Origin: Carpediemonas membranifera BICM
Taxonomy: Eukaryota > Protista > Fornicata
Length of the DNA stretch: 64,000 nucleotides
Direction of reading: 5' to 3'
Assembly (NCBI GenBank): GCA_019828565.1
Contig: JAHDYR010000014.1
Coordinates: forward strand, 277,521-341,520
Shown: positions 21,351 to 64,000 of the stretch, in pieces
How positions within the stretch are numbered: the first letter of the stretch is position 1
How the letters are laid out: every line of letters starts with the position of its first letter
Notes under the pieces: generated by a model
What the model saw: the letters and a program-made list of their open reading frames with translations, nothing else
Told to the model about the DNA's origin: nothing
Databases searched by the model: none
Translations under genes and position numbers: made by a program

Positions 21351-21366
21351 AGCTCAAATTGATCAA

Positions 21367-21930: not shown

Positions 21931-21934
21931 ACCT

Positions 21935-22018
21935 TGTGGTTTGGAAGAGAAAGAGTTTACGAGTAAAAAGAGGTTTGGACCCTCCCAGGGATATTGGTAG
22001 ATATTAATACTGACTACA
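21935..22018 (-). repeat. 3' LTR of element 2 (84 bp)
   Basis: Identical to 27885-27968. Confidence 0.95.
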
Positions 22019-22721
22019 CTTCCCCCCCATGGCCAAGCAGTCGCGCGGCCATCACCACAACCAACATCTGGTATTACGTGGGGCTAGAGCCACCAATCGA
22101 ACTTGGGATTACGCTCGCTCATGCCGAACCACTATTGGAATTATCGACGGGATAACGACAACCAACTTCTGGGATTACGTCTTATTGCAACCTCCAGGTG
22201 AGGTATTATGCGTAGTAAGGTGTGACCGAAAGATTCGAGGATGATATCAAAAAGATTCGGAAAAGATCTATGCAGCGCTGCTAATTAAGATATGGGTTCA
22301 GGAGCTCCTGTATAAGTATAAAAAGGACGTACCACAGCCCCGCCCCCTCGCGGGCACTCTGGGGCTCGCGCTCGACTCGGGAATTCTGGCCCCGAGCATT
22401 TTTAGGCATTTCGCCATCGCTCATACAGAAAGTTCTGGTACGTTGGGCTGATCCGCCCCATTCTTACACAGTGCCCGAAAAAGGGGTTTTCGAGCCCCAA
22501 TTCGGCTTCGTTGGCGAGTTCTGACTCTTTTTGTTCTGCGCTGTACCGAAAGTTAACCAACATCATAAGCACTGCTCCACGGACGGTAGAAGTCTCGTGG
22601 ACTGTGTTTGAGATATAAATATTGTGAATAGTCCGTCATGGGGATCACTATGGGCACTTCCATTCGTCATTTGGGAAAAGTGCAGGATATGTCGCTTTTT
22701 CCTGAGGAAAAGCGGCCAAAC

Positions 22722-23809
22722 ATGGCGGATACGCGTGCGCTCGACCAAATTCGTGAGCTTTCGATGGAGTTAACTGATGACGATTATCGCAAGGTGCTCG
22801 AAAATGCCCTTGCGACGATTGCTCGGACGCAACGCTATAAGGCCCGCACGATGAGCGCCCTGCAGAAGAGGGCCATCCGCAAGAGCGGCGGGAATGCCTC
22901 CCAGATGCCCATGATGCGGTTTGTGCGCCTCTATTCTTCTTACCTAGGATCTTCACCGTGCCGGCAACTTCCGCTCGGGAGCTCTGCCGTGTGCCGGTGG
23001 GGGGTGTGATGGAGGGGTGCTTCACGAAGCAGGCAGACCAGCTCGCCGATGTGGTTCGACGGTGCTTGGCTGGCTACGTTAACTTCGTTGAGGTGCCCCT
23101 CGAGGGGATCTTCGATCACCTCTCCACCGGCACGCTGTGGAGCAAGGACGCAGGCGGCTTGCTCGATCTGTCAGCCGGCCTGCTGGTCCAGCTCCAGCGA
23201 GAGCATCGTGCGCTCCGCTTCCTGCGGGAGGCGTCTCGCAGCCGTGCCGAAACCGACTCCGGCATAGTCCGCGACGCCGTTGACGCCGGCGTTTTCGATC
23301 TCAAGGGCAACGGCTCAAACAGGTACGTCACCCCGGAGACCCTGTTCTCGCTCTCCCGCGCTCTCGGCTGCGGCCAGAGCCTGGCCCGCCGCACCCTGTA
23401 CCGGGTCGCCGTCTTGGCCCTCGCCCCAGACTACTACCGCTTGTTCCTCCACGGGGAGCGTAGCGAGAACGTCTCAGTCACCGCCACTCACTGGGCCGCC
23501 CTGGTCGCTAACCTCCGCGCCATGGACGAGCTTCCGTCCCTGCCGGAGCGGCTCGGTCTGGCCATGCAGGTCTCTGACCCTGAGCGCGAGTACGAGGTCC
23601 TTGACGTGCTGGGTCACGAGATCCTGACGGCTGGATCCGACCGCCGACTCATTCTTCACGTTCAGTACGCGGGCTACACTGCCCCTACCTGCACTGGTCT
23701 GGACGAGACCCTCGCTGCCGTCAGCGTGGCTCGCGAGTATCTGATCGACTTTGAGCTCGAGGACTGGATCAAGGGCCCTGACGACGAGTCCGATGACGAC
23801 TACCAATAA
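22722..23809 (+). CDS. Antisense accessory gene of element 2 with C-terminal chromodomain-like region; exons 22722-22918 and 22948-23809
   Basis: 29-nt intron gtttgtgcgcctctattcttcttacctag fuses two ORFs in frame (MPMMR|IFTVPATSARE). C-terminus EYEVLDVLGH...LHVQYAGYTAPT. Alternative starts at 22689 and 22638. Confidence 0.75.
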
Positions 23810-23828
23810 ATCTTGATTGAGAATCCGT

Positions 23829-26800: not shown

Positions 26801-27868
26801 TCTCGGCCACTTGCGGCGATATGAAGGTTGCTGACGCGCCACAGTCGAACAACATCGACTCTGCGCTGGTCCTGTATATGGATCCTGACACAATCGGAAG
26901 AGCCTGCGCTCTGCGTTTGCTAGACGCCGCGAAACAAGACAAATAAGAATAGTTCTGGACCTTTATACGGTCACAGAACTCTCTCTTGTGGCCCTCGCGC
27001 CCGCACTTCTCACACTTGGACTTGGGCTTCCGGCACTCGGGGCTGAAATGGCCCTTGCCCCCGCAGTTGTAACAGGTTGGGGTCGTGCTGGTAGGGCGAG
27101 CCCGATCGCGGGACCGCTTGTCCGGGCGGTGATGGTCATGCGGGCGGTCACGACGGTCGTAGGGGCGGTCTCGGCGGTCATCTCGGCGGTCACGACGGTC
27201 GCGCTGGTTACGGCTCTGGCCGCGTTGCGGATGGGCGCCTGGCACGGGCGCTGTCGGACGGCGCGACTGATCGGAGCGGATCGCCTCGGTGAACGGAGCA
27301 AGGTACTCAGCCGACTCGGCTACGTCGCGTGCCGTCTTCATGGTGTATTGCTGGGTCTCCGCCAGTGAGCAACCCTCAGTCTGCTCCTTCAGTCTGTAGT
27401 AGAGGGATTGGCCCTTCACAGCAAAGGCCCGCAAGTAGGCTTCACGAATGGTGTCATCCTCGTCCATGTTAAGGCACTCCAACAAGGTGTTGAACTGCGA
27501 GTTGAGCTTCGACACCTCGAGCGGCGTGAACGCCGCGATGCGCAGCCTGATAAGGTTCAGGCATTGTTCCTTTCTGGTGGGCGCAAGGCAGCGGCGAGTC
27601 GCTGCATGATGATCTTCTCTCTGAGCTTGCGTGATGAAGTGGAAGGTTCGTCGTCATGTTGGTCACCCTGAGGAAGCGGAACCTCCTCTAGGGTCTCTAA
27701 GCCTAGCACTTGTGATGCATAGGACTGGATCTCCGGGCTTATAAGCTTGCGGAGCTTCGCCTTACCTCCTCTAGCCTTAAAGTCACGCAGTGACGTCGTA
27801 AAAGCTACGAAAGCGCTGAATGTTGCCTCTTTCAGGAGCGGCGCTTGTTTTTTCTGTTCTCTACCCAT
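23829..27868 (-). CDS. Gag-Pol of element 2 (one -1 frame break near 27570-27582)
   Basis: Two CCHC knuckles (CYNCGGKGHFSPEC, CEKCGREGHKREFC), protease LFDCGASATF, YIDD, TDASDVG, TDHRNL, TDGGSQF, NGLVER, and chromodomain EYLVEWLGYDPDEASWEP. The 5' ORF 27557-27868 connects via a 1-nt shift. Confidence 0.9.
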
Positions 27869-43479: not shown

Positions 43480-46400
43480 ATGAACCTCGGTAATACCGGC
43501 TTTGGAGGCGAGAAGATGATGATCGTGCGGCCCGAGGATCCCAAGGCCGTCATGCACGTTAAGAAGCTGCAGCATGTTCCTGCACTTCTCAATATTTTCG
43601 ATGAGATTCTCGTCAACGCCGCTGATGAGGCTATCCGCAAAGCAACCGACCGCGTGACGAAAAAAAGACGATCTTCGTCCACGTCTCCGAGGACACCATC
43701 ACCGTGGCCAACGACGGCACAGGCGTCAGCGTGTCCGAGCATGAGTCCGGGATCCTGAACCCCGACATCACCTTCGGTGCGAAGAGTGCCAACATCTTCT
43801 CTGACCGCTTCGAGGTCAATATCAAGAACTATCATGCCTACAAGAGCGGCGTCAAGGCGTACTACCACCAGGTGTGGACCCGCAACATGGAGAACATGAC
43901 GGTCCCTGCCGCCAAGTCCCTCTCAACCAAGGCCAAGTGCGACAACATCGACCCGGACCTCATGGCCGAGATGAGCAAGAAGAGGGGCTGCTGCATCATC
44001 TCGTTCAGACCAGACTACTCCCGGTTCGGCGAGGATGACGACCCGATGGACACCCTGGACGACTCCCACAAGGCCCTGTTCGTGCAGCGCGTCCACGAGA
44101 TCGCCAGCTGCCTCGATGCGGTGTCGGTCTGGCTCAAGGTCGATGGGTCCGAGGCCTTTAGCAGCCCAACGAAGCTCCCCAACGGCTTCCACCCTTCATC
44201 AAGCGCATCACGTGCCTCGAGACGGCACCCGACGGCGAGGAGACGCTGGGCCGTGGCAAGACGGCGGTGTCGGTGCAACAGGTCATGGACACCGACGAAG
44301 ATGGCCAGCCAGACGCCCAGGTCATGACGTTCACACTCCGGGGCAACAAGCCCGAGTCCCCTGCCTGGGACATCAGCATCGTCAAGGCTGGACTCCTCGG
44401 GTTGCCGTCGGTCTCCTTCATCATCAGCCCGAGCAGGAGGCCAAGAACGCCGAGATTGCGGCGATCAAGCAGATCCTGGGCCTGTCAGAGAACGACTCGA
44501 CGGACATGCACAGGAAGCTCCGCTACGGCAAGGTGATGCTGATGACGAATCAGGACGCTGACGGCTCTCATATCAAGGGGCTCGTGCTCTCTCTGTTCGA
44601 CCACAAGTGGGCTCCCTCTGCAAGGCGGGCTTCCTACAAGAGTTCGTGACGCCCATTGTCAAGGCGACCAAGGGCCGCAAAGTTCGTTCGTTCTACACCC
44701 TGCCCGAGTATGAGTCCTGGACCGAGAACGAGGGCGCCAAGGGGCAATGGCGGGTGAAGTACTACAAGGGGCTGGGGTCCTCGTCCGACCGCGAGGCCGT
44801 CGAGTACTTCAAAGCCATCGCCCACCACACGATCGACTTCACGTGGGTCTTCCCCAAGGACGAGAGCCGCGACAGGTCCTACAAGAGCGACTTCGCCGCA
44901 TCGTCGGCCGAGCTCAAGAAGGTATTCAACGCCGACAGGACCGTCGCGAGCAGCTTTGCGGACGAGCGGAAGAAGTGGCTGGCCACTGCGGACATGGACG
45001 TGTTCGTCGACTATAACGCCGTCGCCAAAACTAAGCTGCCCATCCACACGTTCGTCAACAAGGAGCTCGTGCTCTACTGCCAGGAGGACAACTTCCGGTC
45101 GATCCCCAGTGTCGTCGACGGCCTCAAGCCCGGCTCCCGCAAGATCCTCTTCGCCCGCTTCAAGCGCAAGCTCAAGGAGCAGATCAAGGTGGCCCAGCTG
45201 GCTGGCTACGTCTCTGAGCACGCCGCCTACCACCACGGCGAGGTGAGCCTCAGCGGGACGATCATCGGCATGGCCCAGAGCTTTGTCGGGTCCAACAACA
45301 TCCCCCTGCTCATGCCTGAGGGCCAGTTCGGGTCCAGGGAGCAGGGTGGGAAGATTGCCGCCTCCCCCAGGTACGTCCACACGCGGCTGTCCGACATGGC
45401 GCGGCTCATCTTCCCCGAGGACGACGACCCACTGCTGGACTACCTCGTGGACGACGGCCAGTCCATTGAACCCGCATTCTACGTCCCCGTCATCCCCATG
45501 GTGCTCATCAACGGCGCGGCGGGCATCGGCACGAGCTGGGCCACTAACATTCCCAACCACTCCCCGCTGGACGTCATCGACGCCGTCAGACGCAGACTAC
45601 ACGTGGCAACGAGAGAGGAGGCTGGGCTGCCTGGCCTCGCCCACTGGTACGCCGGGTGGACCGGCACCATAGTGGCCAAGGACAACGTCGCAGACGGGGA
45701 GCCGCTGACGTACGAGCACACCGGTCGGGTCGAGGCGGTCCCCGTCAACCCCGACGACGACGACCTTTCGTTAGCTTACGACACCATGTGCCTCGAGATC
45801 AGCGAGTTGCCCATCGGGACCTGGACCGAGCCCTACAAGGAGCTGCTCGAGCAGTTCCTACAGGGCGTCTATATCAGACGGAAGTCGGCGAAGGGCGCCT
45901 GGCAGCTCGACATACCCAAGCGCGAGGACAAGATCTCTGCCGTCACCGCGTCGGCCAAGAAGTCACCAGCCCGTGCTAAGGCGGCCAAGAAGGACGAAAA
46001 GTTCGACGAAACCGTCAACGACAAGAACAACAAGGCGTTTAAGCTTGCCGACATGACCCAGCACCATGGGTTGAACATGGTGCGGTTCAGGGTGTCGGTG
46101 ACCAAGCGCATGTACGATGTTGTGCGGCAGACCATTGGCTGGCCCAAGCTGCTGAAGATGAGCGGGTCGATCAGCAAGACCAACATGGTCCTGTTCGACC
46201 GCCACAACCGCATCGTGGAGTGCAAGCGGACGGATGAGATCATCGAGCAGCACTACCAGGTCCGCAGCGAGATGTACCAGCGCCGCATGGACCTGCTGCT
46301 GCTCACACTGCGGTGCCAGTTCCTCATCCAGACCACGATGACCGCCTTCATCAACCTCGTCAACGCCAAGGAGCTTGACACCCACAGGCCCGAGGCCGAG

Positions 46401-47163
46401 CTCATCCAGGAGTTGTGGGGCCGCCAGCTGCTGCCCGATACGGACTCCAGGGCCAAGGTCCTCGCCGCGGCAGGGGCGGGTGAGGTCATGCTGGCTGTGG
46501 AGAACGATGGGCCTCGGACTGAGTTCACCCAGGCCTTCTTCAGGGCTGCTGAGAACGTCACCAAGCTCCAGGAGAACTGCTATAGCAGCCTACTCACCAT
46601 GCCCATCAAAACTCTCACGAAGGAGCGCGCCCAGAAGCTGCATGCGGACGCCGCCGCCACCAAGACCAAGATTATCGAGCTGGTGGGCAACCCCCAAGGA
46701 TCTCTGGCTCGCGGACCTACAGGCGCTGGAAGACGCCCTGATGGAGCGTGACTCGTGCCCCGGCATCACGAGGACGCGGAGGCCGCCCATCCCGGAGCCA
46801 GAGTCTGACAGCGCCGGGACCCCTGACTCTGCAGCGCAGTTCCCGTCGATCAAGCAACGCATCGCCAAGGCGACCCAGGAGCTCGACTCGGAGGAGGCCG
46901 CCACGCCAGTCCAGACCCGCCCCAGGGCACTGAGGACCCGGGCTGCTGCTGTGAGCTACTATGACGACAGTGACAGCGAGGCCTATGACACTGACGACTT
47001 CGACGAGGACATGACCGAACCCGGGCCGACACCGGAACCCAAGGCCAAGGCCCCTGCCCGTCGGATCCGCGGTGTCAACCTCAACTTTGGTGGTAGTTTT
47101 GGAGACTCAGCCAGCGACAGCGACTGCTCGGATATTACCTTAACAGAATTCTTCAAGCTCTAG
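43480..47163 (+). pseudogene. TOP2: Fragmented DNA topoisomerase II
   Basis: IFDEILVNAAD, QDADGSHIKGL, KYYKGLGSS, RSIPSVVDGLKPG, YHHGE, AASPRY spread over at least five ORF segments. The GRNGYG ATP-lid, TEGDSA and PLRGK motifs are absent. Confidence 0.85.
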
Positions 47164-50100
47164 CTGTGAGTGATTTGACCGCACCGGTGTTTATGCAGGC
47201 CAGGCCAGTTGCCAAGCGCTCTCAGGCCTGTGGTGCATTCTTCCCCAACCGACGACGCAGTCACTCGGCACAGCAAGTGTCTCTCTCAAGCAGCTTTTTG
47301 TCACTTCATCTGCCGGTCAGAGTCAGAGTGTTGACTTCCACGTGTGGATGTCGTCGAGCTCGCGGCGGATGGACTGCAGCGCGCTCTGGTGGTTGGCGAC
47401 GACAGTGGCCTGGTCGTTGGCGGTCTCCAAACCCTGCTGGTACTCGTCCTCCGTCGCCTTGACGCGGGCAGCGAACTGGTCGGCGGTCTCGACGGCGACC
47501 TTGCTGACAAGCGGAGCTTCATTGCGGAGAAGCGCTCGCAGGAGGTCCAGATCATGGCCAAGCACCGCAACAACGACGTCCGGCATGTCATGGCGACCCC
47601 CGCAGGTCTTCCGCGGCAGTTATGCGCTGCAACTGCTGCAAGAGCAAGCGCTGCTGCAGTTTTCTCGGCTGAAAGCGCTGAATCGCCACTCCCTGTCGCC
47701 ACCCTCGTGGGGGAGTCGGGCTGTGGCTGTATCACTCCAGTAGCCACCGCAGAGCCTCTGTTAAGGCGTCAGTAACGCTAAGTCTTGCTGTGGGCGTCTG
47801 TCTGACTCAAGTCAGCCTCGTAGAAGGTCGACCAGCCACAGGATAGGGCCATTCTGGTGAGTTCTGCCGTCTTATTCATGCACATTACGGCCATTCAATA
47901 CCTCATTTGACCCACGGTGCCGGTTTGGCGCTCTGCTGTCGCCCCATCCGCGGGCATCCCGGCTGGTCTGGCCTCCAAGCTCTCCAACCATCCAGGCCGA
48001 AATGAGACCTCTTATGCCCCTTTTAGCCCGTATAAACTCGTTTGGACAGGCTGTTGGCGCCCTGGTGGCCATGGCCGGCCGAGTCGATTTTCAGCAAATT
48101 GGGTCGCAGAGCTCGAGCGATGGTTTGAAGGTGAGGTCCACAGAATCACGTGAAAGCGAAGCAATGAGGCTAATATGGCTTTAATAATGCTGCTTTCTGG
48201 TTCAAGCGCTTGAAGACATCTCACTGTGCCACTTTCGGCGATGACACCGAGAACCCGCTATGCTCAGAAGTACTGCAAGCACAGCCCTCGTGATATGTCT
48301 TCTAGTATCACTATACGCTCTCTGTTAGCTTCTTCATCCATGTAGCTCTCCCCAAGGGTAGAAATTTGGCCCAGGAGTTCCATCCGGAGCACACCCCAGC
48401 CATGCCGCCCTGGAGTACCTCTCGGCACGCCATATGACAGTATGAGGATCATCTAACGCATAGCTACCTTTATAGGTGCTGTACCTCCCGCGGTGCCCCC
48501 CGTCCTCCGGTGCCGGCCCGCACTATGCCCCTGCACGGCCCCAGCCCCGGCACCAACTGCCGATCCCAGCTGTACTAAGCAACATCAAGGTCTGGGGCAA
48601 TTTTCGTGCTGTCTCCCCGTGACGGATTTTAATCACTACTTGTCTGGCGTCATGGCTAGTCGGAGAAAGCTGAGAGCAACTATAATCTTTTTGCCAGCGC
48701 AAACCTTTTTGGCAGACGGCGCTGGGTCCTTTTACGCCGTCTACGGGCTTGTCTCAGTCCCAATCGTCAGTACTGAGGTGGGAGACCACTCGGGAATACG
48801 GGATGTCGTAGACTTTTGCCTTTTGCGCCCGTTCATCGCCCACACTATGCGCCATCGTGTTCAGCGCCCTTCATTGCATACCTGTAGCCGTTCTCTCTGC
48901 CATTCTTTCATTCGTTCAGTCAGCCAGCCGTCAGTCAGCCCAACCCGCCCCCAGCCCGTCCGAACGCCGGGAGAGAGAGGAAGGAGAGGAGAGGAGAAGA
49001 GAGGGGGGAAAGAAAGAAAGACTAGCCCACCATCCCGGCATGTATACCGGGCCCCGCCCCCTGTAATATGTAAATCGAATACCAATTTGGGCAGAACTCG
49101 GGCTACAGGCCGAATTGGGTCCTAAAACTGCGGGAGCATGCTTATCTAACCGCGTAAAACACCCTGGCGCAGCGCGGGAGCTCAACTACCCCTCCTTCGT
49201 GAGATACGTCGATTCCAAGGTTGAGCCGACCAAATTCCCGAGTAGCGCAGCTGCGAGGGCGGAGCCCGGGGCAGTCGACGCGGGGGAGGGGAAGGACCAA
49301 GCGTGTGCAAGGGCAGGCCGGGAGGCCGGCCCTTTGGCACACAGCAAAATCGGTCTGGGTCGGTCAGACCCCATGTCATCCCAGACTCCATCACTCAAAA
49401 TGGTGCGTGCATGCATGCTTTAGAGCCCATTCCGAAGCTATATCGACCATCAATTTGGTTGGTGACATGTTCACCTGACTTTCGAAATCCTCCCGAGACT
49501 GCGGGTCCGAAGCTGAGCGATGCCGTCACCTCGACTACTACCATCGAATCGCTGTCGCTCTGCCATAATGCTTGTATAGCCCTCTAACATCTGGATCCGG
49601 GCCATTACCAGCGGGCGCACACTGGAAGTATGCGTTTGGAGTCGATCCGATCTTCGATCTCGGCGGACATCGAACATGACGAGTAGAGGTCGGAGAGGGC
49701 TGAAACTCACACCATTGCACTGTAAGAGAAGCTCATACAGGATGGCTGACCCATATTTATTTTTTAAACTCCCAACCTTAATTTCTGGAGTCGTCGAAAA
49801 TGACGACTCAGTTTGACTCAATACACCCTCAGCCTGCACCCACTGGCGTAACTACAGCTACTAGGCCTGGATAGAGTGCGATTGCCCCACTAACAGCTTT
49901 GAACTCAGTGTCAGCCGTGATCGCGGTGGCGACGCTGAGCACCGAGTTCGGCACCACTGAATTCGGATGACACCCAGCCAGAGACTGTAAGTGGGGCAAT
50001 AGCCTTAGATACGTCTAAAACTAGGATGGACGTGGGCTGGGTGCACACTGACACTCCAGCGGCTCTAGGCGAAAAGTGAATTTCGACCGACTCGACTTGA

Positions 50101-50948
50101 CTCCATCAGACCTCAGACCTCGGATCTGACCATAACGCCGCCATCTAGGGCCATATAGAGTGCATTTGCCCAGGAGCCAGGCCTGAACTCGATGGTCAGT
50201 TTCACCCGGTTCAGCGGCCCGGAGCCTTCGGACAGCCACTTTCGGAATTCAGTTGGGACGTCGTAGAGGGCTGAAAGTGGGGCAATAGACTTGGATTGGG
50301 CTAACACTGGGATGTTAGTGGACTGAGTGAATACTGACACTTGGGCGGGTCACTTTTGAGATGGTCGAAATCCGTGTTCCAGTCAAGACCTTTGAGGTGT
50401 GGGAGCGCGGGACACGCAGTGAATCCATGCTCTAGAGCCAGTATTAGGTAAGGTAAGAAGATATATATTAAGGTAGGGGGTGTTTTTTAGCCTGCGGGAT
50501 TTGCGGTCAGGCGCCTTCGGTGAACTCTGACACTACGCCCCTGTAGTGCTATCGTACCTTACTTCACGTAAGCACTTTTGTCTTTCAACTCCGACTCCTT
50601 CATATCAAAAAGTCCGCTAGAAATCACGATCGAAAATTTCCCAAAAATGCTTTTACGAACGAACCAGAGGACGTCAGATGTTCTAGTAAAAAGCATTGTG
50701 CACTAGACATGCCAGTGTTTATCGGCACCGGATGGATTTTTTATAAAAATTATTATTCGCGATTTTAGAACTTTTGCGCTCACCTCTCGGGATTTTTGGA
50801 ATAGCTGAGCTAAGCCACTATCATGTAAAATCGTAATAACTGTATAGCTACATATGCTACATGAGTGAGTCATCGATCGGGCTCTCAATCTCGAGATATG
50901 GAAAAAAATCTAAACGAAAGAATCTCCTCAGCGACCAGTACACCACGA

Positions 50949-51155
50949 GCGGAGTCCGCGGGGGTCGCAGGGGGCAGAGAGAGTGACGGAGGCGTAGAGA
51001 GGTGTAGCGTAGCGGAGGGCGGGAGGAGCGTAGCGACGAGCGCCCGGAGCGAAGCGAAGCCGAACGAAGCCGGAGGAACGAACGGAGCCCCCCCGTCTTC
51101 AATTCCGGGGGGTGCAGGGGGGCAGAGGGAGGCGCAGCCGACCGTAGCCCCCGCT
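50949..51155 (+). repeat. About 200-bp GC-rich block with GCGNAGC mini-hairpin motifs, shared by all long array units
   Basis: Near-identical to about 53991-54196 and to the equivalent block in four further units. Confidence 0.85.
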
Positions 51156-51215
51156 ATGACAGGTCTGTGTGTGTCCCGCTTTTCGGAGATCTCCGAAAGT
51201 GAATTCGGGTCAACT

Positions 51216-51476
51216 CAGTACGAGTCGAGGAGCAGTACCCAGAGACTGCCACTATACATGCAGGCACTGTACGGCCTCTAGCCGTGATGTATGCAGAATC
51301 AGTGCGATCGGGCGCGGGCCTCGATTTCCCGATTTTCATGAGCCTCATGAAATTTCGACGGCCCAGTACGAGCCGAGGAGCAGTAGCCAGAGACTGCCAC
51401 TGTACATGCAGACACTGTACGGCCTCTAGCCGTGATGTATGCAGAATCGGGGCGATCAGACGCGGGCCTCGATTTT
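51216..51476. repeat. Two-copy direct repeat (about 112 bp, period 148)
   Basis: cagtacgag...gtatgcagaatc...gcgggcctcgattt at 51216 and 51364. Preceded by the 18-bp palindrome tttcggagatctccgaaa (51181-51198). Confidence 0.85.
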
Positions 51477-51674
51477 CGCCCCCATCGAACAGTCCGATGG
51501 ATACGACGACTTGGAGGTCACCAGGGTCTGAAACTGACTGGATAGTTGCTCATGGTGGCTCCATACAGGTTGAGGGTCATTTCATTTTTTCGAAAATGAG
51601 TTCATCTTATTTTCGATTCGGAGCAAATCGACTCTGACTCGGGTCAGAGTCATTTTTTCACGACCGAACGAATA

Positions 51675-52988
51675 ATGAGAGATACTGGTCTTTCATCGAC
51701 GAAAACGTGTAGAAATAACGTACGTTCAAAGACATTTACACTTATGTAGTTTGATTTCCATTCGGGCATCCGCAACCCCGTCATCGATGATGATGAAACT
51801 TCAACTTCGGCTACGAGCCTCGACGACCACCTCATCGACGAGCTCAAGGTTCCCCCTCGACCGCCACGACCACCTGATCCTGATAGCAGCGATTTCTCCG
51901 CCAGTTCGATCGACGATGACCTTGTCGACGGATTGAAGGGCCCAGCTGTCCCGACTCACGACCACGGCGACGATGTCTGGATGGACGATATCGACAGCGA
52001 TGATAACGACGTTGGCGAAGATTTAGTTGACTTCATCGATGACGGCGCTGACGGCGACGACGGTGACCGCACTCAGTATCGTGTCCGCGGTGTTGAAGAT
52101 GACACCCCATACGACCAACATCAGCACATCGAAATGTCACAGGAGCATGACAGCGACACTGAGATTGACAGCGACGCCGAGCTGTACGACCAACCAATAG
52201 AGGCCGGCCTGACCAACGGCTTCGAAAGTCTCGCAGACGCTCCACCTATAGTCTTACCGGACACAGCCACTGTTCGGAGGATGTGTCCCATCTGTGGCGC
52301 TACATCGTTCAAGGGCAACCGCCTCTGCCCGTGCCCAAAGAACGTGAGAAAGCGCGACCGGCCATCGAAACGAGAAGAGTTTCAGCGTACGCTCACTGCT
52401 TCGATCGATTCCCTCCCTGCTTCTGTGCAGGATCAGCTCTTCGTTCTCTCTCACGTACAGTTCCGCCTGGTGAATCACTCGCTCGCCCTCGCTACTGTCA
52501 TGACTCACGTTAGCGAGAGGTACGCCTACCTGGTCACATTCAAGGGCATGATCACCGCATTCGGCAAGACCTTGAAGAGCTCTGGCAAGCTCCGTGGGGA
52601 CCCGATTCCGACTGTTCCGAACGAGCTGACGTCTGCTCTTCGTGACATCTTCTCTTCCGATGCTAACTACGCATCGATGCGCGCCTTGCTAGACGAGTGC
52701 GAGAAGCGAGAAGCCGACCCCGGCGCCACGCAGGTGGTTTTCTCATTCAACCGTAGCAGGATGACCGTGGCTGACGTCACTGTCGCGTTCATTCCGAACC
52801 CCACGCTCGCTGGTCTAACACCCGGACAGTTCGGCCTCCCATCCGCCGATGACAATAGTAGGCCGTTTGTCAACTTCGACTCTCCGAAGGCCGCGTTCTA
52901 TATGTTCCCCCTTCTTTTCCCCGACACTATTGGATTCACCAGCGACTACCGGGCATTCATGGGATCTCGCAGCTCCCTCAAAAGGTAA
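51675..52988 (+). pseudogene. 3'-truncated Helitron RepHel-like N-terminus; exons 51675-51719 and 51750-52988
   Basis: Acidic N-terminus, then CPICGA..CPC, QFRLVNHSLALA (cf. IRxYNxxFAF) and YMFPLLFPDTIG (cf. YPLLFPxGxxG). 30-nt GT-AG intron in frame. The stop codon comes from the aaggtaag junction. Confidence 0.65.
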
Positions 52989-53185
52989 GTTATAGTAAGG
53001 TTTCACTTGATTTGGGGGTGCCCGTGTAGAGGGAGTTTCGGCCTCTCGGCCGAAGGCGAGTGCACGCGCGTGTAGCCTACCCCAGTGACCCTTCGAGCAC
53101 CCCATGAAATCTGGGACAATCGCCCAGCAACCATCTAAATTTTTGGCCTCAAAATGGGGTTCTCAAAAATTGTTCGCCGAGTTGG
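52982..53185 (+). repeat. Short diverged TAAGG-led unit (about 204 bp)
   Basis: Starts aaggtaagttatagtaagg. Shares gcgtgtagcctacccca and tgaaatctgggacaa with the main unit. Confidence 0.75.
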
Positions 53186-54924
53186 AAGGTAAGGTAAGTT
53201 ATGGTAAGGTATTGCGGATTTTGGGGGGTCCCGGTACGGGACCCCTGGGCCCCTGCCAGGGAAGGCGACACATGCAGCGTGTAGCCTACCCCAGGGGTCC
53301 TTCGAACATGCATTGAAATCTGGGACAACGCAAATATTTTATACTAAATTTTCCCGCTCAAAAACGGGACCTCAAAATTGGACTTTGAGGTCAGAGCACA
53401 TGCTTACAGACGGCGTTCAGGGCTGCGGATTGCTTCTCTGGATAGCTGTGCGTGTCAGCTCGGAGGCGCCGCCCTAAGCTCTATTCAACTCCGTCGTCTT
53501 TACATTGAATTATGCATAAATAGTTATAGGACAAAAGTCGCGATCGCTAACTTCTTGTGCAGTACAGCACGAGGCCTGAGGCTTCCGGGCTGCTGGATTT
53601 GGAATTTTTGAAAGTCTCTCGCAGTGTGATTGAGTCACGATATCCATCCGAATCTGGCGAACCGCGTTCAAAGACCGGTTTTACTGGCCTCAAGGATTGA
53701 TGCTGGAGCTAAACAGAGTATACTGCTGTATCATGTTGCGTACGTGTAGGAACGTTATTTTCCCCGATTTTTGATTTAGGCCCTCAACAAATTTTTATAG
53801 AGCCTTTTTGTGTCCATGGTGAGTGAATACGTCTAGAGTGACGCGTATGGAATGGAAGAGAACACGGGTGCGCACTACAATACATAATTACATGCTCTGA
53901 GGAGGATGGGGGTATTTATTTTTTCATATGTAAATCACAGCCCGAGATTCAAAAATTTGTGGGGTGATCTGACGTAGTTACAGGCCATGGGCGGAGTCCG
54001 CGGGGGGTCGCAGGGGGGCAGAGAGAGTGACGGAGGCTTAGAGAGGTGTAGCGTAGCGGAGGGCGGGAGGAGCGTAGCGACGAGCGCCCGGAGCGGAGCG
54101 AAGCCGAACGAAGCCGGAGGAACGAACGGAGCCCCCCCGTCTTCAATTCCGGGGGGTGCAGGGGGGCAGAGGGAGGCGCAGCCGACCGTAGCCCCTGCCT
54201 CTACCCATTCTACGTTCGTTAATCATTTACATGTGGCCACTGCCACTTCGATACTAATAGTTCTTACGATTGAAGCAAGTCCGTCCTTCCTTCTTCGGTG
54301 TGATGCACCCCTTCGGCTTCTTGGGATGTTCGTCGTCGTCCTCGCTGTCCGAGTAGATGATGAACTTGGTAGAGCGAGGGCGGCCGAGCTTGCGGGCAGG
54401 TGCGGGGGCTGACTCTCTCAGGGGAGATGGTGCGGCCCTAGTCGAGCGCTTGGGGAGGATACGGCGCGGTGGTGTAGTCCGCAAACGCTTTGGGGGCACG
54501 TATCCTTGCGAGGACGGCGAGGCAGAGGGCGAGCTGATCGATATGCTCTCGATGTCGTGCACAAGAGGAGACGCGGGCTGAGGGGCGGGCACTGGCTTGG
54601 CCTGGGGTGGACATCTCATGGCTATGCGTTGGTGGGGTGCAGGGGGGCGCTGCGGCTGCTGTACCGTCCCAGGTCATGCACAAGGCACTCCAGCGCGCCA
54701 AGGTGCTGTCCAAGAACCCGGACCGCTATTGGGCGGTCGTGGATGCGCTGTTTGCGCTCGGCGCCAGTGGCTCAGTCCTGAACGGCTTAGCGTTCGTCAT
54801 GTCCAAACAACTTGAATAAATCTGACTGCCATGTGTTCTTTAGGGCTAGCCAAGCTAATCTGGGCAGTTGCAAGGCATGACGACCAATATTGACTGAGAT
54901 ATGGCCGAGGTCCAAAAAAGGATG

Positions 54925-54993
54925 TGCCAGGAGGGATTCGAACCTACCACCTCTTGTATTCACCAACATCTGCTATACCATCTACACCATGGC
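54925..54993 (-). tRNA. Degenerate tRNA-like gene (His-like, GTG)
   Basis: GCCATGG...CCTGGCA ends, A-box-like TGTAGATGG, B-box GGTTCGAATCC and a downstream T6 terminator. Stems are imperfect. Confidence 0.45.
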
Positions 54994-55068
54994 TCAAACC
55001 TGACGCGTTACAACAGACTTGACTTCCAGATATGTGACAATTGACGCATCATGATCTGGCCAGGCGGA

Positions 55069-55761
55069 GATGGGGCGGAGATGGAGCATAGGGGACTTCA
55101 CCAGCGTGTTCAGCGCCCCGAACTACCCCCGGGCAGTCCACGACTTGAGGTCAAAAGATTGAGTAAAGATATGCTTTGACGACCTCGTCAATACGTGACA
55201 TTGGAGGGCTGGGACTTCGCACCCATGTATGCGTGCGGGCCTATAGACAGCTGTAGAGCGCACATGTCGCGATTCAGCCTTCATCTGGGTGTGGTCTACT
55301 CGTTGTCCGCTCGCCTTGCGTGATTGAAGCTGAGCGACGTGGCTGGATCAACTTGACCATGGTTTCAGCGAGATGAAGAGTGAAATGTGCTCTATGGGGC
55401 CTAGAACGTGTCTAGCCGGGGGTGGTTGTGAACGCTGAGGTCTGCAACTCTGGGTTTGAGTCGCGGAATTCGATCCCCGGGATTTGGCGGTGATGGGGCG
55501 GAGATGGAGCATAGGGGACTTCACCAGCGTGTTCAGCGCCCCGAACTACCCCCGGGCAGTCCACGACTTGAGGTCAAAAGATTGCGTAAAGATATGCTTT
55601 GACGACCTCGTCAATACGTGACATTGGAGGGCTGGGACTTCGCACCCATGTATGCGTGCGGGCCTATAGACAGCTGTAGAGCGCACATGTCGCGATTCAG
55701 CCTTCATCTGGGTGTGGTCTACTCGTTGTCCGCTCGCCTTGCGTGATTGAAGCTGAGCGAC
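55069..55761. repeat. 270-bp direct repeat (period 423) inside the first array unit
   Basis: 55069-55338 is near-identical to 55492-55761. Confidence 0.9.
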
Positions 55762-58700
55762 TGTAAGTTATGGTAAGGTATTGCGGATTTTGGGGGGTCC
55801 CGGTACGGGACCCTGGGCCCTGCCAGGGAAGGCGACACATGCAGCGTGTAGCCTACCCCAGGGGTCCTTCGAACATGCATTGAAATCTGGGACAACGCAA
55901 ATATTTTATACTAAATTTTCCCGCTCAAAAACGGGACCTCAAAATTGGACTTTGAGGTCAGAGCACATGCTTACAGACGGCGTTCAGGGCTGCGGATTGC
56001 TTCTCTGGATAGCTGTGCGTGTCAGCTCGGAGGCGCCGCCCTAAGCTCTATTCAACTCCGTCGTCTTTACATTGAATTATGCATAAATAGTTATAGGACA
56101 AAAGTCGCGATCGCTAACTTCTTGTGCAGTACAGCACGAGGCCTGAGGCTTCCGGGCTGCTGGATTTGGAATTTTTGAAAGTCTCTCGCAGTGTGATTGA
56201 GTCACGATATCCATCCGAATCTGGCGAACCGCGTTCAAAGACCGGTTTTACTGGCCTCAAGGATTGATGCTGGAGCTAAACAGAGTATACTGCTGTATCA
56301 TGTTGCGTACGTGTAGGAACGTTATTTTCCCCGATTTTTGATTTAGGCCCTCAACAAATTTTTATAGAGCCTTTTTGTGTCCATGGTGAGTGAATACGTC
56401 TAGAGTGACGCGTATGGAATGGAAGAGAACACGGGTGCGCACTACAATACATAATTACATGCTCTGAGGAGGATGGGGGTATTTATTTTTTCATATGTAA
56501 ATCACAGCCCGAGATTCAAAAATTTGTGGGGTGATCTGACGTAGTTACAGGCCATGGGCGGAGTCCGCGGGGGGTCGCAGGGGGCAGAGAGAGTGACGGA
56601 GGCTTAGAGAGGTGTAGCGTAGCGGAGGGCGGGAGGAGCGTAGCGACGAGCGCCCGGAGCGGAGCGAAGCCGAACGAAGCCGGAGGAATGAACGAGCCCC
56701 CGTCTTCAATTCCGGGGGGTGCAGGGGGGCAGAGGGAGGCGCAGCCGACCGTAGCCCCTGCCTACCCATTCTACGTTCGTTAATCATTTACATGTGGCCA
56801 CTGCCACTTCGATACTAATAGTTCTTACGATTGAAGCAAGTCCGTCCTTCCTTCTTCGGTGTGATGCACCCCTTCGGCTTCTTGGGATGTTCGTCGTCGT
56901 CCTCGCTGTCCGAGTAGATGATGAACTTGGTAGAGCGAGGGCGGCCGAGCTTGCGGGCAGGTGCGGGGGCTGACTCTCTCAGGGGAGATGGTGCGGCCCT
57001 AGTCGAGCGCTTGGGGAGGATACGGCGCGGTGGTGTAGTCCGCAAACGCTTTGGGGGCACGTATCCTTGCGAGGACGGCGAGGCAGAGGGCGAGCTGATC
57101 GATATGCTCTCGATGTCGTGCACAAGAGGAGACGCGGGCTGAGGGGCGGGCACTGGCTTGGCCTGGGGTGGACATCTCATGGCTATGCGTTGGTGGGGTG
57201 CAGGGGGGCGCTGCGGCTGCTGTACCGTCCCAGGTCATGCACAAGGCACTCCAGCGCGCCAAGGTGCTGTCCAAGAACCCGGACCGCTATTGGGCGGTCG
57301 TGGATGCGCTGTTTGCGCTCGGCGCCAGTGGCTCAGTCCTGAACGGCTTAGCGTTCGTCATGTCCAAACAACTTGAATAAATCTGACTGCCATGTGTTCT
57401 TTAGGGCTAGTCAAGCTAATCTGGGCAGTTGCAAGGCATGACGACCAATATTGACTGAGATATGGCCGAGGTCCAAAAAAGGATGTGCCAGGAGGGATTC
57501 GAACCTAAGTTATGGTAAGGTATTGCGGATTTTGGGGGGTCCCGGTACGGGACCCCTGGGCCCCTGCCAGGGAAGGCGACACATGCAGCGTGTAGCCTAC
57601 CCCAGGGGTCCTTCGAACATGCATTGAAATCTGGGACAACGCAAATATTTTATACTAAATTTTCCCGCTCAAAAACGGGACCTCAAAATTGGACTTTGAG
57701 GTCAGAGCACATGCTTACAGACGGCGTTCAGGGCTGCGGATTGCTTCTCTGGATAGCTGTGCGTGTCAGCTCGGAGGCGCCGCCCTAAGCTCTATTCAAC
57801 TCCGTCGTCTTTACATTGAATTATGCATAAATAGTTATAGGACAAAAGTCGCGATCGCTAACTTCTTGTGCAGTACAGCACGAGGCCTGAGGCTTCCGGG
57901 CTGCTGGATTTGGAATTTTTGAAAGTCTCTCGCAGTGTGATTGAGTCACGATATCCATCCGAATCTGGCGAACCGCGTTCAAAGACCGGTTTTACTGGCC
58001 TCAAGGATTGATGCTGGAGCTAAACAGAGTATACTGCTGTATCATGTTGCGTACGTGTAGGAACGTTATTTTCCCCGATTTTTGATTTAGGCCCTCAACA
58101 AATTTTTATAGAGCCTTTTTGTGTCCATGGTGAGTGAATACGTCTAGAGTGACGCGTATGGAATGGAAGAGAACACGGGTGCGCACTACAATACATAATT
58201 ACATGCTCTGAGGAGGATGGGGGTATTTATTTTTTCATATGTAAATCACAGCCCGAGATTCAAAAATTTGTGGGGTGATCTGACGGAGTTACAGGCCATG
58301 GGCGGAGTCCGCGGGGGGTCGCAGGGGGGCAGAGAGAGTGACGGAGGCGTAGAGAGGCGTAGCGTAGCGGAGGGCGGGAGGAGCAACGCGACGAGCGCCC
58401 GGAGCGGAGCGAAGCCGAACGAAGCCGGAGGAACGAACGGAGCCCCCCCGTCTTCAATTCCGGGGGGTGCAGGGGGGCAGAGGGAGGCGCAGCCGACCGT
58501 AGCCCCCGCTCTACCCATTCTACGTTCGTTAATCATTTACATGTGGCCACTGCCACTTCGATACTAATAGTTCTTACGATTGAAGCAAGTCCGTCCTTCC
58601 TTCTTCGGTGTGATGCACCCCTTCGGCTTCTTGGGATGTTCGTCGTCGTCCTCGCTGTCCGAGTAGATGATGAACTTGGTAGAGCGAGGGCGGCCGAGCT

Positions 58701-60010
58701 TGCGGGCAGGTGCGGGGGCTGACTCTCTCAGGGGAGATGGTGCGGCCCTAGTCGAGCGCTTGGGGAGGATACGGCGCGGTGGTGTAGTCCGCAAACGCTT
58801 TGGGGGCACGTATCCTTGCGAGGACGGCGAGGCAGAGGGCGAGCTGATCGATATGCTCTCGATGTCGTGCACAATAGGAGACGCGGGCTGAGGGGCGGGC
58901 ACTGGCTTGGCCTGGGGTGGACATCTCATGGCTATGCGTTGGTGGGGTGCAGGGGGTAAGTTATGGTAAGGTATTGCGGATTTTGGGGGGTCCCGGTACG
59001 GGACCCCTGGGCCCCTGCCAGGGAAGGCGACACATGCAGCGTGTAGCCTACCCCAGGGGTCCTTCGAACATGCATTGAAATCTGGGACAACGCAAATATT
59101 TTATACTAAATTTTCACGCTCAAAAACGGGACCTCAAAATTGGACTTTGAGGTCAGAGCACATGCTTACAGACGGCGTTCAGGGCTGCGGATTGCTTCTC
59201 TGGATAGCTGTGCGTGTCAGCTCGGAGGCGCCGCCCTAAGCTCCATTCAAATCCGTCGTCTTTACATTGAATTATGCATAAATAGTTATAGGACAAAAGT
59301 CGCGATCGCTAACTTCTTGTGCAGTACAGCACGAGGCCTGAGGCTTCAGGGCTGCGGGATTTGGAATTTTTGAAAGTCTCTCGCAGTGTGATTGAGTCAC
59401 GATATCCATCCGAATCTGGAGAATTGGAAAACTGGTACCGGCGGCGTGACCTTAAGTTTTGATGCTAGAGTAAATCTGATGCTACATATATACGCTACGG
59501 TGAAATAGAAAAGGCCCTACGAAGAGTTTTTTTCGATTTAGGCCCTCAACAAATTTTTATAGAGCCTTTTTGTGTCCATGGTGAGTGAATACGTCTAGAG
59601 TGACGCGTATGGAATGGAAGAGAACACGGGTGCGCACTAAAATACATAATTACATGCTCTGAGGAGGATGGGGGTATTTATTTTTTCATATGTAAATCAC
59701 AGCCCGAGATTCAAAAATTTGTGGGGTGATCTGACGGAGTTACAGGCCATGGGCGGAGTCCGCGGGGGGTCGCAGGGGGGCAGAGAGAGTGACGGAGGCG
59801 TAGAGAGGCGTAGCGTAGCGGAGGGCGGGAGGAGCGTAGCGACGAGCGCCCGAGCGGAGCGAAGCCGAACGAAGCCGGAGGAATGACGGAGCCCCCGTCT
59901 TCAATTCCGGGGGGTGCAGGGGGGCAGAGGGAGGCGCAGCCGACCGTAGCCCCCGCTCTACCCATTCTACGTTCGTTAATCATTTACATGTGGCCACTGC
60001 CACTTCGATA

Positions 60011-62038
60011 CTAATAGTTCTTACGATTGAAGCAAGTCCGTCCTTCCTTCTTCGGTGTGATGCACCCCTTCGGCTTCTTGGGATGTTCGTCGTCGTCCTC
60101 GCTGTCCGAGTAGATGATGAACTTGGTAGAGCGAGGGCGGCCGAGCTTGCGGGCAGGTGCGGGGGCTGACTCTCTCAGGGGAGATGGTGCGGCCCTAGTC
60201 GAGCGCTTGGGGAGGATACGGCGCGGTGGTGTAGTCCGCAAACGCTTTGGGGGCACGTATCCTTGCGAGGACGGCGAGGCAGAGGGCGAGCTGATCGATA
60301 TGCTCTCGATGTCGTGCACAATAGGAGACGCGGGCTGAGGGGCGGGCACTGGCTTGGCCTGGGGTGGACGTCTCATGGCTATGCGTTGGTGGGGTGCAGG
60401 GGGGCGCTGCGGCGGCTCGTCATCGTCAGAGATCTCGATTGGATTCAGGGCGCTTTCTCTCGTTGCAGCCGAGTAGTCCACGTACTCGAGCTGGCGTTCG
60501 ATCCCGTCTTCGGGGAAGACACACATAAAGTGAATGCCGTCGTTGTAGCGGATGCCGGTCGCGAGAATGGCCTTGTCTGGGTTGATGACGTCTTGGCACT
60601 TGGGCACGCGGCGGTCGGGGTCATCGTCTGCAGGCCTGATGGTGTACTCAATCGTGTTCTGATTCTTGTACAGAATCAGCGAGTCGTTCTTGATGCCGCA
60701 CTCGTGACAGTAGAAAGCCCACACGGTGGGAATATTCAAGAACGTTCCCTCGAGCGTGATCGTGTGAGCTCTCTCGGGGGCAAAGCCGAGGAATATGAGG
60801 GAGTGGGGGTCTCTGTAGTCACAGCAGTACTGCCTGAACCGCTGCCGGAAGACCTTGACGCGTCCATCCACGTCGTCGCCGGTGCCAAGCGACATGAAGA
60901 AGTCGTAGAACGCCTTGGTGCGCATGGCGAGGGCAAAGATGGCGCAGTCGCCACCGCCGTCGTTGTCGTAGAGCCGAGCGTTGCTGTAGTCCCGGGTCGT
61001 GATCTTTCTGGGGTTGAGCAGCGGGCACTTGCTGGCCATCTCGTCCTCTGGCTGCGTTGGAGGCTCGACTACCGGAATGGTGGGCGTGGGCGGCTCTGTT
61101 CTCTCGCGGGACTTGCGGCGGTGTTGGACAGTGAGCGCGTATGTCGCGTCTCCCTTGCTGTAGTCAGGTGTAGGCGGGGACTCGGGAGAGCCCATGTCGA
61201 AGACGATGGTGGGCTTGTTCTTGCGTTTGTGCTTCCGCTTGTCCTTGCGCTTGGTCGTGGTCTTGGGCTGGGCAGGCTTGTGGGCGGCTGGAGGATGCTC
61301 TTGGGCGCGGCGTGCTTCTTCGATGCGGGAGAGAATAGTCTGGATTGCCTCGTTGGCGTCCTCGGCCTCTGCTGTGTCGAGGAGTTCTTTCGCCGCGTCG
61401 GTGTCGTTGCTGATGATCGATATGACTGTGCCAGGGTCTTTGCTTGACGCCTCCTGCACCCATTGGTCAATGGCAGTGGTCTCCTCCGCGCTGATGATGC
61501 CTGCTGCGGCGAGCTCGTGCACCTCGTTCTGTTTCTCGATGCGGTAGAAGTTGTCGCGACGGAAGCGCTGTACGAGGCTCCGCTGGACGCGGGTGAGATT
61601 CAGCTCGTGTAGTGAGCGGTACGTGGCGTTGAGATGCTCGAACCCAATGGCAGCGACGTTGTCTTCGCACTCATAGTCGGTCAGCGCCTCGAGTTCGACG
61701 TCTGATTCGAGCTCTGCGTCGCTGAAGGCCGTGTCTATGTGTCTCACTCTGGGCTTGCTCTTCGCGCCGGGCTTGCGGGGGTTACGCTTGGTCTGCTTGC
61801 GCTTAGTCTTCTTCAGCTTCGGAGCAACGGGGATGAGGCGCTTGCGGGGCAGGGCTGGGCCGCGGGTGGTGCTGCGCTTGGCGTACATGGTCGCTGCGTT
61901 GGCGAACCTGATCCAGTCTTTGACCTTGAGCATCTTGCGGACGACCTCGTTGGTGTTGTCGTCGACGCTGACGCCTGAGTTGTCGATGAAGGCCTCTCGA
62001 GTGGTGTGCCTGACGATCATGTCGGTCAGGGGAAGCAT
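60011..62038 (-). CDS. OTU-like cysteine protease domain protein with basic and acidic low-complexity regions, probably 5'-truncated
   Basis: DNDGGGDCAIFALA (Cys loop), FRQRFRQY, and YNDGIHFMCV (His loop). The frame stays open up to the TAAGG junction. Its 3' about 125 codons recur in every unit. Confidence 0.65.
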   Translation of the reverse strand: MLPLTDMIVRHTTREAFIDNSGVSVDDNTNEVVRKMLKVKDWIRFANAATMYAKRSTTRGPALPRKRLIPVAPKLKKTKRKQTKRNPRKPGAKSKPRVRHIDTAFSDAELESDVELEALTDYECEDNVAAIGFEHLNATYRSLHELNLTRVQRSLVQRFRRDNFYRIEKQNEVHELAAAGIISAEETTAIDQWVQEASSKDPGTVISIISNDTDAAKELLDTAEAEDANEAIQTILSRIEEARRAQEHPPAAHKPAQPKTTTKRKDKRKHKRKNKPTIVFDMGSPESPPTPDYSKGDATYALTVQHRRKSRERTEPPTPTIPVVEPPTQPEDEMASKCPLLNPRKITTRDYSNARLYDNDGGGDCAIFALAMRTKAFYDFFMSLGTGDDVDGRVKVFRQRFRQYCCDYRDPHSLIFLGFAPERAHTITLEGTFLNIPTVWAFYCHECGIKNDSLILYKNQNTIEYTIRPADDDPDRRVPKCQDVINPDKAILATGIRYNDGIHFMCVFPEDGIERQLEYVDYSAATRESALNPIEISDDDEPPQRPPAPHQRIAMRRPPQAKPVPAPQPASPIVHDIESISISSPSASPSSQGYVPPKRLRTTPPRRILPKRSTRAAPSPLRESAPAPARKLGRPRSTKFIIYSDSEDDDEHPKKPKGCITPKKEGRTCFNRKNY

Positions 62039-63786
62039 CTTCCTGTGCAGGAAGGTAAGGTAAGGTAAGTTATGGTAAGGTATTGCGGATTTTGGGGGGT
62101 CCCGGTACGGGACCCCTGGGCCCCTGCCAGGGAAGGCGACACATGCAGCGTGTAGCCTACCCCAGGGGTCCTTCGAACATGCATTGAAATCTGGGACAAC
62201 GCAAATATTTTATACTAAATTTTCCCGCTCAAAAACGGGACCTCAAAATTGGACTTTGAGGTCAGAGCACATGCTTACAGACGGCGTTCAGGGCTGCGGA
62301 TTGCTTCTCTGGATAGCTGTGCGTGTCAGCTCGGAGGCGCCGCCCTAAGCTCTATTCAACTCCGTCGTCTTTACATTGAATTATGCATAAATAGTTATAG
62401 GACAAAAGTCGCGATCGCTAACTTCTTGTGCAGTACAGCACGAGGCCTGAGGCTTCCGGGCTGCTGGATTTGGAATTTTTGAAAGTCTCTCGCAGTGTGA
62501 TTGAGTCACGATATCCATCCGAATCTGGCGAACCGCGTTCAAAGACCGGTTTTACTGGCCTCAAGGATTGATGCTGGAGCTAAACAGAGTATACTGCTGT
62601 ATCATGTTGCGTACGTGTAGGAACGTTATTTTCCCCGATTTTTGATTTAGGCCCTCAACAAATTTTTATAGAGCCTTTTTGTGTCCATGGTGAGTGAATA
62701 CGTCTAGAGTGACGCGTATGGAATGGAAGAGAACACGGGTGCGCACTACAATACATAATTACATGCTCTGAGGAGGATGGGGGTATTTATTTTTTCATAT
62801 GTAAATCACAGCCCGAGATTCAAAAATTTGTGGGGTGATCTGACGTAGTTACAGGCCATGGGCGGAGTCCGCGGGGGGTCGCAGGGGGGCAGAGAGAGTG
62901 ACGGAGGCGTAGAGAGGCGTAGCGTAGCGGAGGGCGGGAGGAGCGTAGCGACGAGCGCCCGAGCGGAGCGAAGCCGAACGAAGCCGGAGGAATGACGGAG
63001 CCCCCGTCTTCAATTCCGGGGGGTGCAGGGGGGCAGAGGGAGGCGCAGCCGACCGTAGCCCTGCCTACCCATTCTACGTTCGTTAATCATTTACATGTGG
63101 CCACTGCCACTTCGATACTAATAGTTCTTACGATTGAAGCAAGTCCGTCCTTCCTTCTTCGGTGTGATGCACCCCTTCGGCTTCTTGGGATGTTCGTCGT
63201 CGTCCTCGCTGTCCGAGTAGATGATGAACTTGGTAGAGCGAGGGCGGCCGAGCTTGCGGGCAGGTGCGGGGGCTGACTCTCTCAGGGGAGATGGTGCGGC
63301 CCTAGTCGAGCGCTTGGGGAGGATACGGCGCGGTGGTGTAGTCCGCAAACGCTTTGGGGGCACGTATCCTTGCGAGGACGGCGAGGCAGAGGGCGAGCTG
63401 ATCGATATGCTCTCGATGTCGTGCACAATAGGAGACGCGGGCTGAGGGGCGGGCACTGGCTTGGCCTGGGGTGGACATCTCATGGCTATGCGTTGGTGGG
63501 GTGCAGGGGGCGCTGCGGCTGCTGTACCGTCCCAGGTCATGCACAAGGCACTCCAGCGCGCCAAGGTGCTGTCCAAGAACCCGGACCGCTATTGGGCGGT
63601 CGTGGATGCGCTGTTTGCGCTCGGCGCCAGTGGCTCAGTCCTGAACGGCTTAGCGTTCGTCATGTCCAAACAACTTGAATAAATCTGACTGCCATGTGTT
63701 CTTTAGGGCTAGTCAAGCTAATCTGGGCAGTTGCAAGGCATGACGACCAATATTGACTGAGATATGGCCGAGGTCCAAAAAGGATG

Positions 63787-63855
63787 TGCCAGGAGGGATT
63801 CGAACCTACCACCTCTTGTATTCACCAACATCTGCTATACCATCTACACCATGGC
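63787..63855 (-). tRNA. Second copy of the degenerate tRNA-like gene
   Basis: Same sequence as 54925-54993. Confidence 0.45.
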
Positions 63856-64000
63856 TCAAACCTGACGCGTTACAACAGACTTGACTTCCAGATATGTGAC
63901 AATTGACGCATCATGATCTGGCCAGGCGGAGATGGGGCGGAGATGGAGCATAGGGGACTTCACCAGCGTGTTCAGCGCCCCGAACTACCCCCGGGCAGTC

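Follow-up and report, generated by a model that had tools for sequence, protein, structure and literature searches.

We analysed a window of 64 kb, which is the final part of contig C15 (341,520 bases) in the Carpediemonas membranifera assembly (24.2 Mb, 69 contigs). The last base of the window is also the end of the contig. The last host gene that we recognised was a frameshifted topoisomerase II (~43.7-47.2 kb), in agreement with an earlier note on this DNA, which had recognised no housekeeping gene past 47 kb. This copy (43704-47163) is split into several frames. Two apparently intact LTR-type elements (gag-pol, chromodomain-like tail) are found in opposite orientation at 17005-27515. A repeated subtelomeric unit, called unit F, underlies the stack, in which a single family B unit and a 200-bp end of family C are followed by five units of family A. 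Parts of a Helitron-type enzyme, called RepHel (HUH/Y2 Rep, Pif1 and a putative OTU-like tail), are encoded in the stack. The features are as follows:

47601..50445, plus strand: repeated subtelomeric unit F, the base for the first Helitron unit, with copies elsewhere
50446..52981, plus strand: family B unit with its own fixed end and a RepHel N-terminus facing the chromosome end; junction repeat 12 nt
50943..51155, plus strand: G/A-rich block of ~150-210 bp common to families A, B and D, a candidate cis signal; other copies at 53985, 56552, 58296, 59747 and 62856, plus strand
51675..52988, plus strand: family B RepHel 5' fragment, cut ahead of the Rep catalytic motifs
52982..53185, plus strand: 200-bp piece of the family C left end, with 70% identity to that of family A; junction repeat 8 nt
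53186..55762, plus strand: non-autonomous A' unit, cut in the second satellite copy; junction repeat 13 nt
53225..53245, plus strand: subterminal hairpin with a 9-bp stem, lying ~30 nt inwards from the fixed end of family A
55763..57505, plus strand: A' unit, cut within a tRNA-like remnant; junction repeat 5 nt; right junction recurs on C31 and C38
57506..58954, plus strand: unit of type A' or A, truncated at 1.45 kb; junction repeat 4 nt; junction recurs on C31
58955..62051, plus strand: autonomous-type family A unit with the RepHel 3' part on the minus strand, cut just past the helicase; junction repeat 6 nt
60011..62038, minus strand: C-terminal 675 codons of family A RepHel, corresponding to the C-terminal part of the C37 frame
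about 60434-61006, minus strand: putative OTU-like domain with an Asp/Cys/His motif
62052..64000, plus strand: A' unit that opens with 18 nt of telomere repeat and runs off the end of C15

All seven junctions claimed in the earlier note were present, each opening with part of a TAAGG run. Its count of at least three families with one geometry was also correct, as B starts at 50446 and C at 52982, in addition to A. The left end is common to the five family A units (94-99% identity), and a 24-bp piece of the family C end is carried by C11. The right sides, which the note had described as cut at arbitrary positions, do end in the satellite (55762), in an open reading frame (58954, 62051) and at the contig end. 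The cut described as lying within a tRNA (57505) falls in a sequence that is only tRNA-like. Most units are non-autonomous. They have the first 1.46 kb of family A in common, followed by the tRNA-like remnant and a 423-bp satellite; this is the structure of the unit at 53186..55762, where the satellite begins at 55063. Longer units on C31, C37 and C38 contain up to 12 satellite copies. The remnant in the non-autonomous units resembles tRNA-His (54921-54990, minus strand). Neither ARAGORN nor Rfam called a tRNA gene in the A' units.

Unit F has copies of 97-99% identity directly proximal to the C31 array, and six copies in tandem open C23 with a period of ~9.5 kb. One further copy abuts the C24 telomere and is cut by it. 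Unit F also contains a widely dispersed 650-bp repeat (49275-49930), and it may belong to arrays of a site-specific retrotransposon.

The longest readable family A copy, on C37, contains an open frame of 1,707 codons, encoded on the complement of the fixed-end strand. A profile search found Helitron_like_N and PIF1 in this frame, and its HUH, two-tyrosine and helicase motifs were intact. The Helitron-like cargo proposed from the window was therefore confirmed in a longer copy. Both domains were above the cut-off in families A and D, and RepHel matched the Helraiser structure 7LCC. Family D, present on C38 and C26, shows 32-34% identity to A. Across 3.1 kb, the window unit at 58955..62051 has 94% identity to the C37 copy, and its junction was found twice on C31. 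Of the eight PIF1 matches in the genome, seven belong to the telomeric Helitron system, which accounts for every Helitron helicase that we found. We calculated dN/dS for RepHel between A lineages with dS 0.11-0.14 and obtained 0.05-0.06 over 341-623 codons (p <= 3e-11), which argues that the lineages spread through their own enzyme. In the tail, with the putative OTU-like part, dN/dS was ~0.25. The OTU gene named in the earlier note stands as a motif and not as a recognised domain: the Asp/Cys/His motif is invariant in three divergent members and there was a weak atlas lead, but we obtained no Pfam or PDB match, and the fold model built from a three-row alignment had a pLDDT of 35.

RepHel of family B is oriented opposite to that of family A, and its frame showed 35% identity to the N-terminus of the C26 RepHel (searched with exon 2 only). 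The fragment has a 30-nt GT-AG intron at 51720-51749, and its stop codon comes from the next junction. In RNA-like contigs (the RNA status was assigned by the tool) these 30 nt are absent, the next junction is crossed and an A tail is present near 53154. The amputated fragment thus appears to give a spliced, polyadenylated transcript (51653-53154). The genome paper, in contrast, described the Helitron-related genes as without introns or expression (PMC8516963).

Single-stranded DNA hairpins had also been proposed for these units. The subterminal hairpin is present in every A unit, and the terminal 100 nt fold better than shuffled sequences (z -2.5 and -3.1). It is not conserved in B and is different in C. 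A large hairpin in the GC block shared by the units was not supported on the plus strand, where the block folded no better than shuffles (z +3.0, -0.7).

We identified (GGTAA)n tracts at the extremities of C14, C24, C31 and C37, with the G-rich strand running endward. Therefore TAAGG, with which the units open, is the telomere repeat. The terminal tracts measured 444 and 548 nt, that is ~90-110 repeats, and the C31 telomere itself starts with GTAAG. A compact, intronless TERT candidate of ~820 aa lies in an 834-codon open frame on C39 (L033:241-2742, minus strand, G000:C39). Telomerase_RBD and RVT_1 were above the cut-off in a profile search and the usual motifs are intact. The main text of the genome paper describes neither the telomere repeat nor TERT (PMC8516963). 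Family A ends are absent from the C14 and C24 telomeres, so the stacks are optional. On this ground and that of the intact TERT we rejected the units as a replacement for telomerase; the Helitron stacks accompany telomerase. We take the Carpediemonas genome to be permanent and without programmed elimination.

Further, we mapped the fixed ends over the assembly; C1:925-955 kb, C14, C23, C24, C26 and the final 3 kb of C11 were covered by coordinates of matches only. Family A has 33 ends, and 29 of them are no more than 50 kb away from one of six contig ends. In every one of the 29 the fixed end is proximal, so the terminal location and uniform polarity supposed in the earlier note were borne out. 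Two copies of the family B fixed end lie in the last 6.4 kb of C11, and family D is found at the starts of C26 and C38. Families A, B and D together occupy eight ends with one polarity (1 in 256 if the ends are independent). On C31 and C37 the arrays continue into (GGTAA)n, while contig ends elsewhere need not be chromosome ends. The remaining four A copies are older (88-95% identical) and lie inside C1, where LTR elements interrupt them. In this internal cluster (G000:C1:881168-943816, L026-L029 in part) three or more copies run one way and one faces them. The cluster may be the relic of an end-to-end fusion, or a scaffolding or assembly join. At the start of C46 (L023:1-400, G000:C46) the distal side of a family A unit is fused to a fragment of 18S rDNA.

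In the DNA that we read there were 24 distinct junctions. Their repeat runs measure 4-40 nt, with 13 at 8 nt or less. TAAG precedes the element-specific sequence in all 24. We considered whether the junctions could be artefacts made by collapsed long-read repeats. The contig end is repetitive, and independent reads bridge only one of the seven junctions in the window. This one, junction 52982, is nevertheless present in two independent studies, bridged by contigs of a 2017 (RNA-like) and a 2021 (DNA-like) run. Four others (55763, 57506, 58955, 62052) recur on other contigs, and there was no read coverage at 50446 and 53186. Moreover, the 24 distinct junctions follow one rule, some of them cutting unique sequence, and the same junction type occurs in another assembly. 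An assembly artefact was the least probable of all the explanations that we weighed.

The uncut sequence was known for 13 junctions, and here the microhomology was 0-3 nt. Additions without microhomology mostly open with GTAAG, and the starts in partial register coincide with native bases. Telomerase heals non-telomeric ends in this way. The register and the microhomology together suggest healing by telomerase, and the final GTAAG could instead belong to the element; the register bias taken alone gave p 0.06. Ordinary open reading frames are cut by the innermost junctions, which indicates that the ends were made at breaks.

In Paramecium aurelia, germline telomeric Helitrons cap the chromosome ends, and the authors read their geometry as insertion into the C-rich telomere strand (Arnaiz et al. 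2026, PMC13085455). Such insertion would explain much in Carpediemonas too: the polarity, the short repeats at the proximal end and the presence of ORFs in either direction are all as in Paramecium, there is a terminal hairpin, and the repeat number at one junction differs among its copies (1 versus 4, 3 versus 4, 6 versus 8 units). The last observation means that inner tracts may have shrunk after insertion. An intact distal end was seen in none of the more than 30 units read (the set excludes the distal parts on C1 and C26), and insertion would require a separate break for every cycle. Even at the outermost junctions there are just 4-8 repeats, compared with ~90-110 in the terminal tracts. 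For the runs of all 24 junctions, uniform insertion into a mature tract of 444-548 nt gives p ~1e-25. Random insertion into mature tracts was rejected on these short runs, unless the tracts shrink later. On balance we regard insertion of the Paramecium type as unlikely, and yet as the strongest competitor of joining to freshly healed ends.

The stacks might also be made by recombination only. A short healed telomere would invade the telomere-like start of a unit and copy it, so that the stacks no longer need Rep; this route is break-induced replication, as in the Y' arrays of yeast. Identical junctions occur in shuffled order on C15, C31 and C38, therefore recombination multiplies the units and the true additions are fewer than the units. 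Degenerate telomere repeats open the units, most of which have no ORF, and the Helitron-related genes were found to be unexpressed in the genome paper (PMC8516963). On the other hand, Rep and the helicase are under strong purifying selection between lineages, the geometry is common to four or five divergent families and to a second genome, and some junctions have just 4-5 nt of homology. Recombination almost certainly explains the shuffling, even if it is not the origin of the stacks; as their only source we judge it improbable. The units had been pictured as added one after another, but many units in a stack are recombinational copies of one junction.

Retrotransposition in trans, in the manner of Athena and Terminon elements, would have a reverse transcriptase prime on the chromosome 3' end and copy an RNA ending in CCUUA. 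It predicts the same geometry of fixed proximal and variable distal ends, and the genome contains many RTs. No RT was found in any unit by profile search, in line with the earlier note, no poly(A) belongs to the units, and selection acts on a DNA transposase. Family B retains its intron, and the transcribed strand is wrong for a template. A search of 50300-56000 gave no hammerhead or other Rfam match at unit ends. We consider this route very improbable.

We propose that a telomere-specialised Helitron clade, which encodes RepHel, is joined to freshly healed chromosome ends. We hold this proposal to be about evenly poised. First, a chromosome end would break or lose its telomere. Telomerase would then begin healing with one to few GTAAG units on 0-3 nt of pairing. 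At the invariant end, the 5' end of the G-rich strand would be held covalently by Rep, which would transfer it to the chromosome 3'-OH; here the invariant end is read as the rolling-circle origin. The strand peeled off by the helicase, with its second end unjoined, would become the new terminus, and it would be cut or eroded arbitrarily and afterwards healed or extended. Finally, recombination in the common 1.46 kb and in the copies of the 423-bp satellite would shuffle the units among ends.

The transfer of the Rep-held end to the 3'-OH is what the geometry suggests, and for this step alone the balance also lies near the middle. Helraiser cannot do without the end that Rep holds by a 5'-phosphotyrosine, and it can dispense with the other (PMC4778049). 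Therefore, when one end is invariant and the opposite one arbitrary, the invariant end is most simply read as the origin. A chromosome 3'-OH ending in GTAAG could resolve the Rep bond without a nick in the target. Against such joining, the invariant A end resembles the right end of a Helitron, both in its subterminal hairpin and in its position downstream of the A and D ORFs. We know of no Helitron Rep that joins a free 3'-OH.

We searched 1.8 billion proteins for relatives of RepHel. The best three were two Carpediemonas proteins and P0008 (E 7e-135), and the next unrelated one followed at 9e-43. P0008 is encoded on a 7-kb contig of GCA_047518385.1, and four near-perfect TAAGG repeats form a junction ~330 bp upstream of its ORF (L034:140-165). 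These repeats have the same polarity, begin with GTAAG and are followed by sequence resembling the fixed ends. The junction would extend the system to a second assembly; as it comes from one contig, we treat it as a lead. Telomere repeats were absent near the relatives P0002, P0011 and P0017. In a rough FastTree tree, the Carpediemonas proteins and P0008 formed one long-stemmed clade. The tree was built without the near-duplicates P0158-P0162, P0168, P0173 and P0174 and the mis-ranged P0040, and its rows contained neither Paramecium nor labelled HLE1 proteins. One-ended rolling-circle addition to chromosome ends, with no target nick or second joint, is perhaps conserved in a lineage related to Carpediemonas, which we advance somewhat more tentatively than the proposal for Carpediemonas itself. 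It might also hold for the Paramecium elements.

Before the 2026 Paramecium report, the telomere-specialised mobile elements of eukaryotes were essentially retroelements. With Carpediemonas, rolling-circle transposons occupy the telomere niche in a second, distant lineage; they entered it on two occasions or descend from one old clade. The 24 junctions would record separate end-healing events to the single base, which makes them unusually informative, and predict which strand Rep holds. They make testable the target choice and joining of Helitrons, and the handling of ends in a host that is reported to lack ORC and Cdc6. If true, one-ended addition would be the DNA counterpart of Athena and HeT-A. 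Two further products of our analysis are the Carpediemonas telomere repeat, TAAGG, and a candidate TERT.

In common with HLE1 (Helitron1, Helraiser) and HLE2 (Helitron2/Helentron, FoHeli), the Carpediemonas elements have the HUH Y2 Rep and Pif1 in one ORF, a subterminal hairpin (at the A end, but not in B), non-autonomous derivatives, OTU cargo (putative here) and variants with a reversed ORF (PMC11417382, PMC5148889, PMC4778049). HLE1 elements have the ends 5'-TC and CTRR-3' and a target between A and T; neither motif is present at the invariant end, which follows TAAG in 24 of 24 junctions. In contrast to HLE1 and HLE2, there are no dispersed autonomous copies, and the putative OTU lies downstream of the helicase. 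HLE2 elements have short asymmetric terminal inverted repeats, a T|T target and a DUF6570 or EN domain. The longest unit, whose second end is missing, contains no inverted repeat of its fixed end, and RepHel had no match to DUF6570 or an EN domain by profile search. In the FastTree tree, with its weak backbone, the RepHel clade fell outside the group with the labelled HLE2-type rows. The telomeric Helitrons of D. biarmipes are also Helitron DNA at telomeres, but they are dead fragments in random orientation (PMC6581046).

The EN-deficient Penelope-like Athena, Coprina and Terminon elements (10.1101/2021.04.23.441226) resemble the Carpediemonas units in the fixed proximal telomere-like end, the distal truncation, the polarised stacks and the telomerase-positive hosts. 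These elements depend on a Penelope-type RT, and their RNA template carries hammerhead motifs beside reverse-complement telomere repeats, whereas the Carpediemonas enzyme is a DNA transposase. Head-to-tail polarised terminal arrays are also formed by HeT-A/TART/TAHRE and by the Gil elements. GilM/GilT of Giardia and HeT-A of Drosophila are non-LTR retrotransposons, and Drosophila has no telomerase.

The closest system is that of Paramecium. Since Helitron-capped ends were reported there (PMC13085455), the strategy has been described before, contrary to what the earlier note had supposed, and Carpediemonas is the second case of telomeric Helitrons. Both systems are restricted to chromosome ends (the C1 cluster is the exception in Carpediemonas) and have absolute polarity and proximal telomere repeats. 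In both, the ORF points inwards or outwards depending on the family, ORF-less derivatives bear satellites, purifying selection operates and telomerase is present. In Paramecium many copies are complete: they have both termini, repeats on both sides and ORFs of 9-10 kb. In the Carpediemonas units that we read no distal terminus was seen, the cuts are arbitrary, RepHel is no longer than ~2,000 aa, and the units follow each other directly, in many cases separated by a single repeat or less. The Carpediemonas system is thus set apart from that of Paramecium by its one-endedness, as far as read, and by its very short junction tracts.
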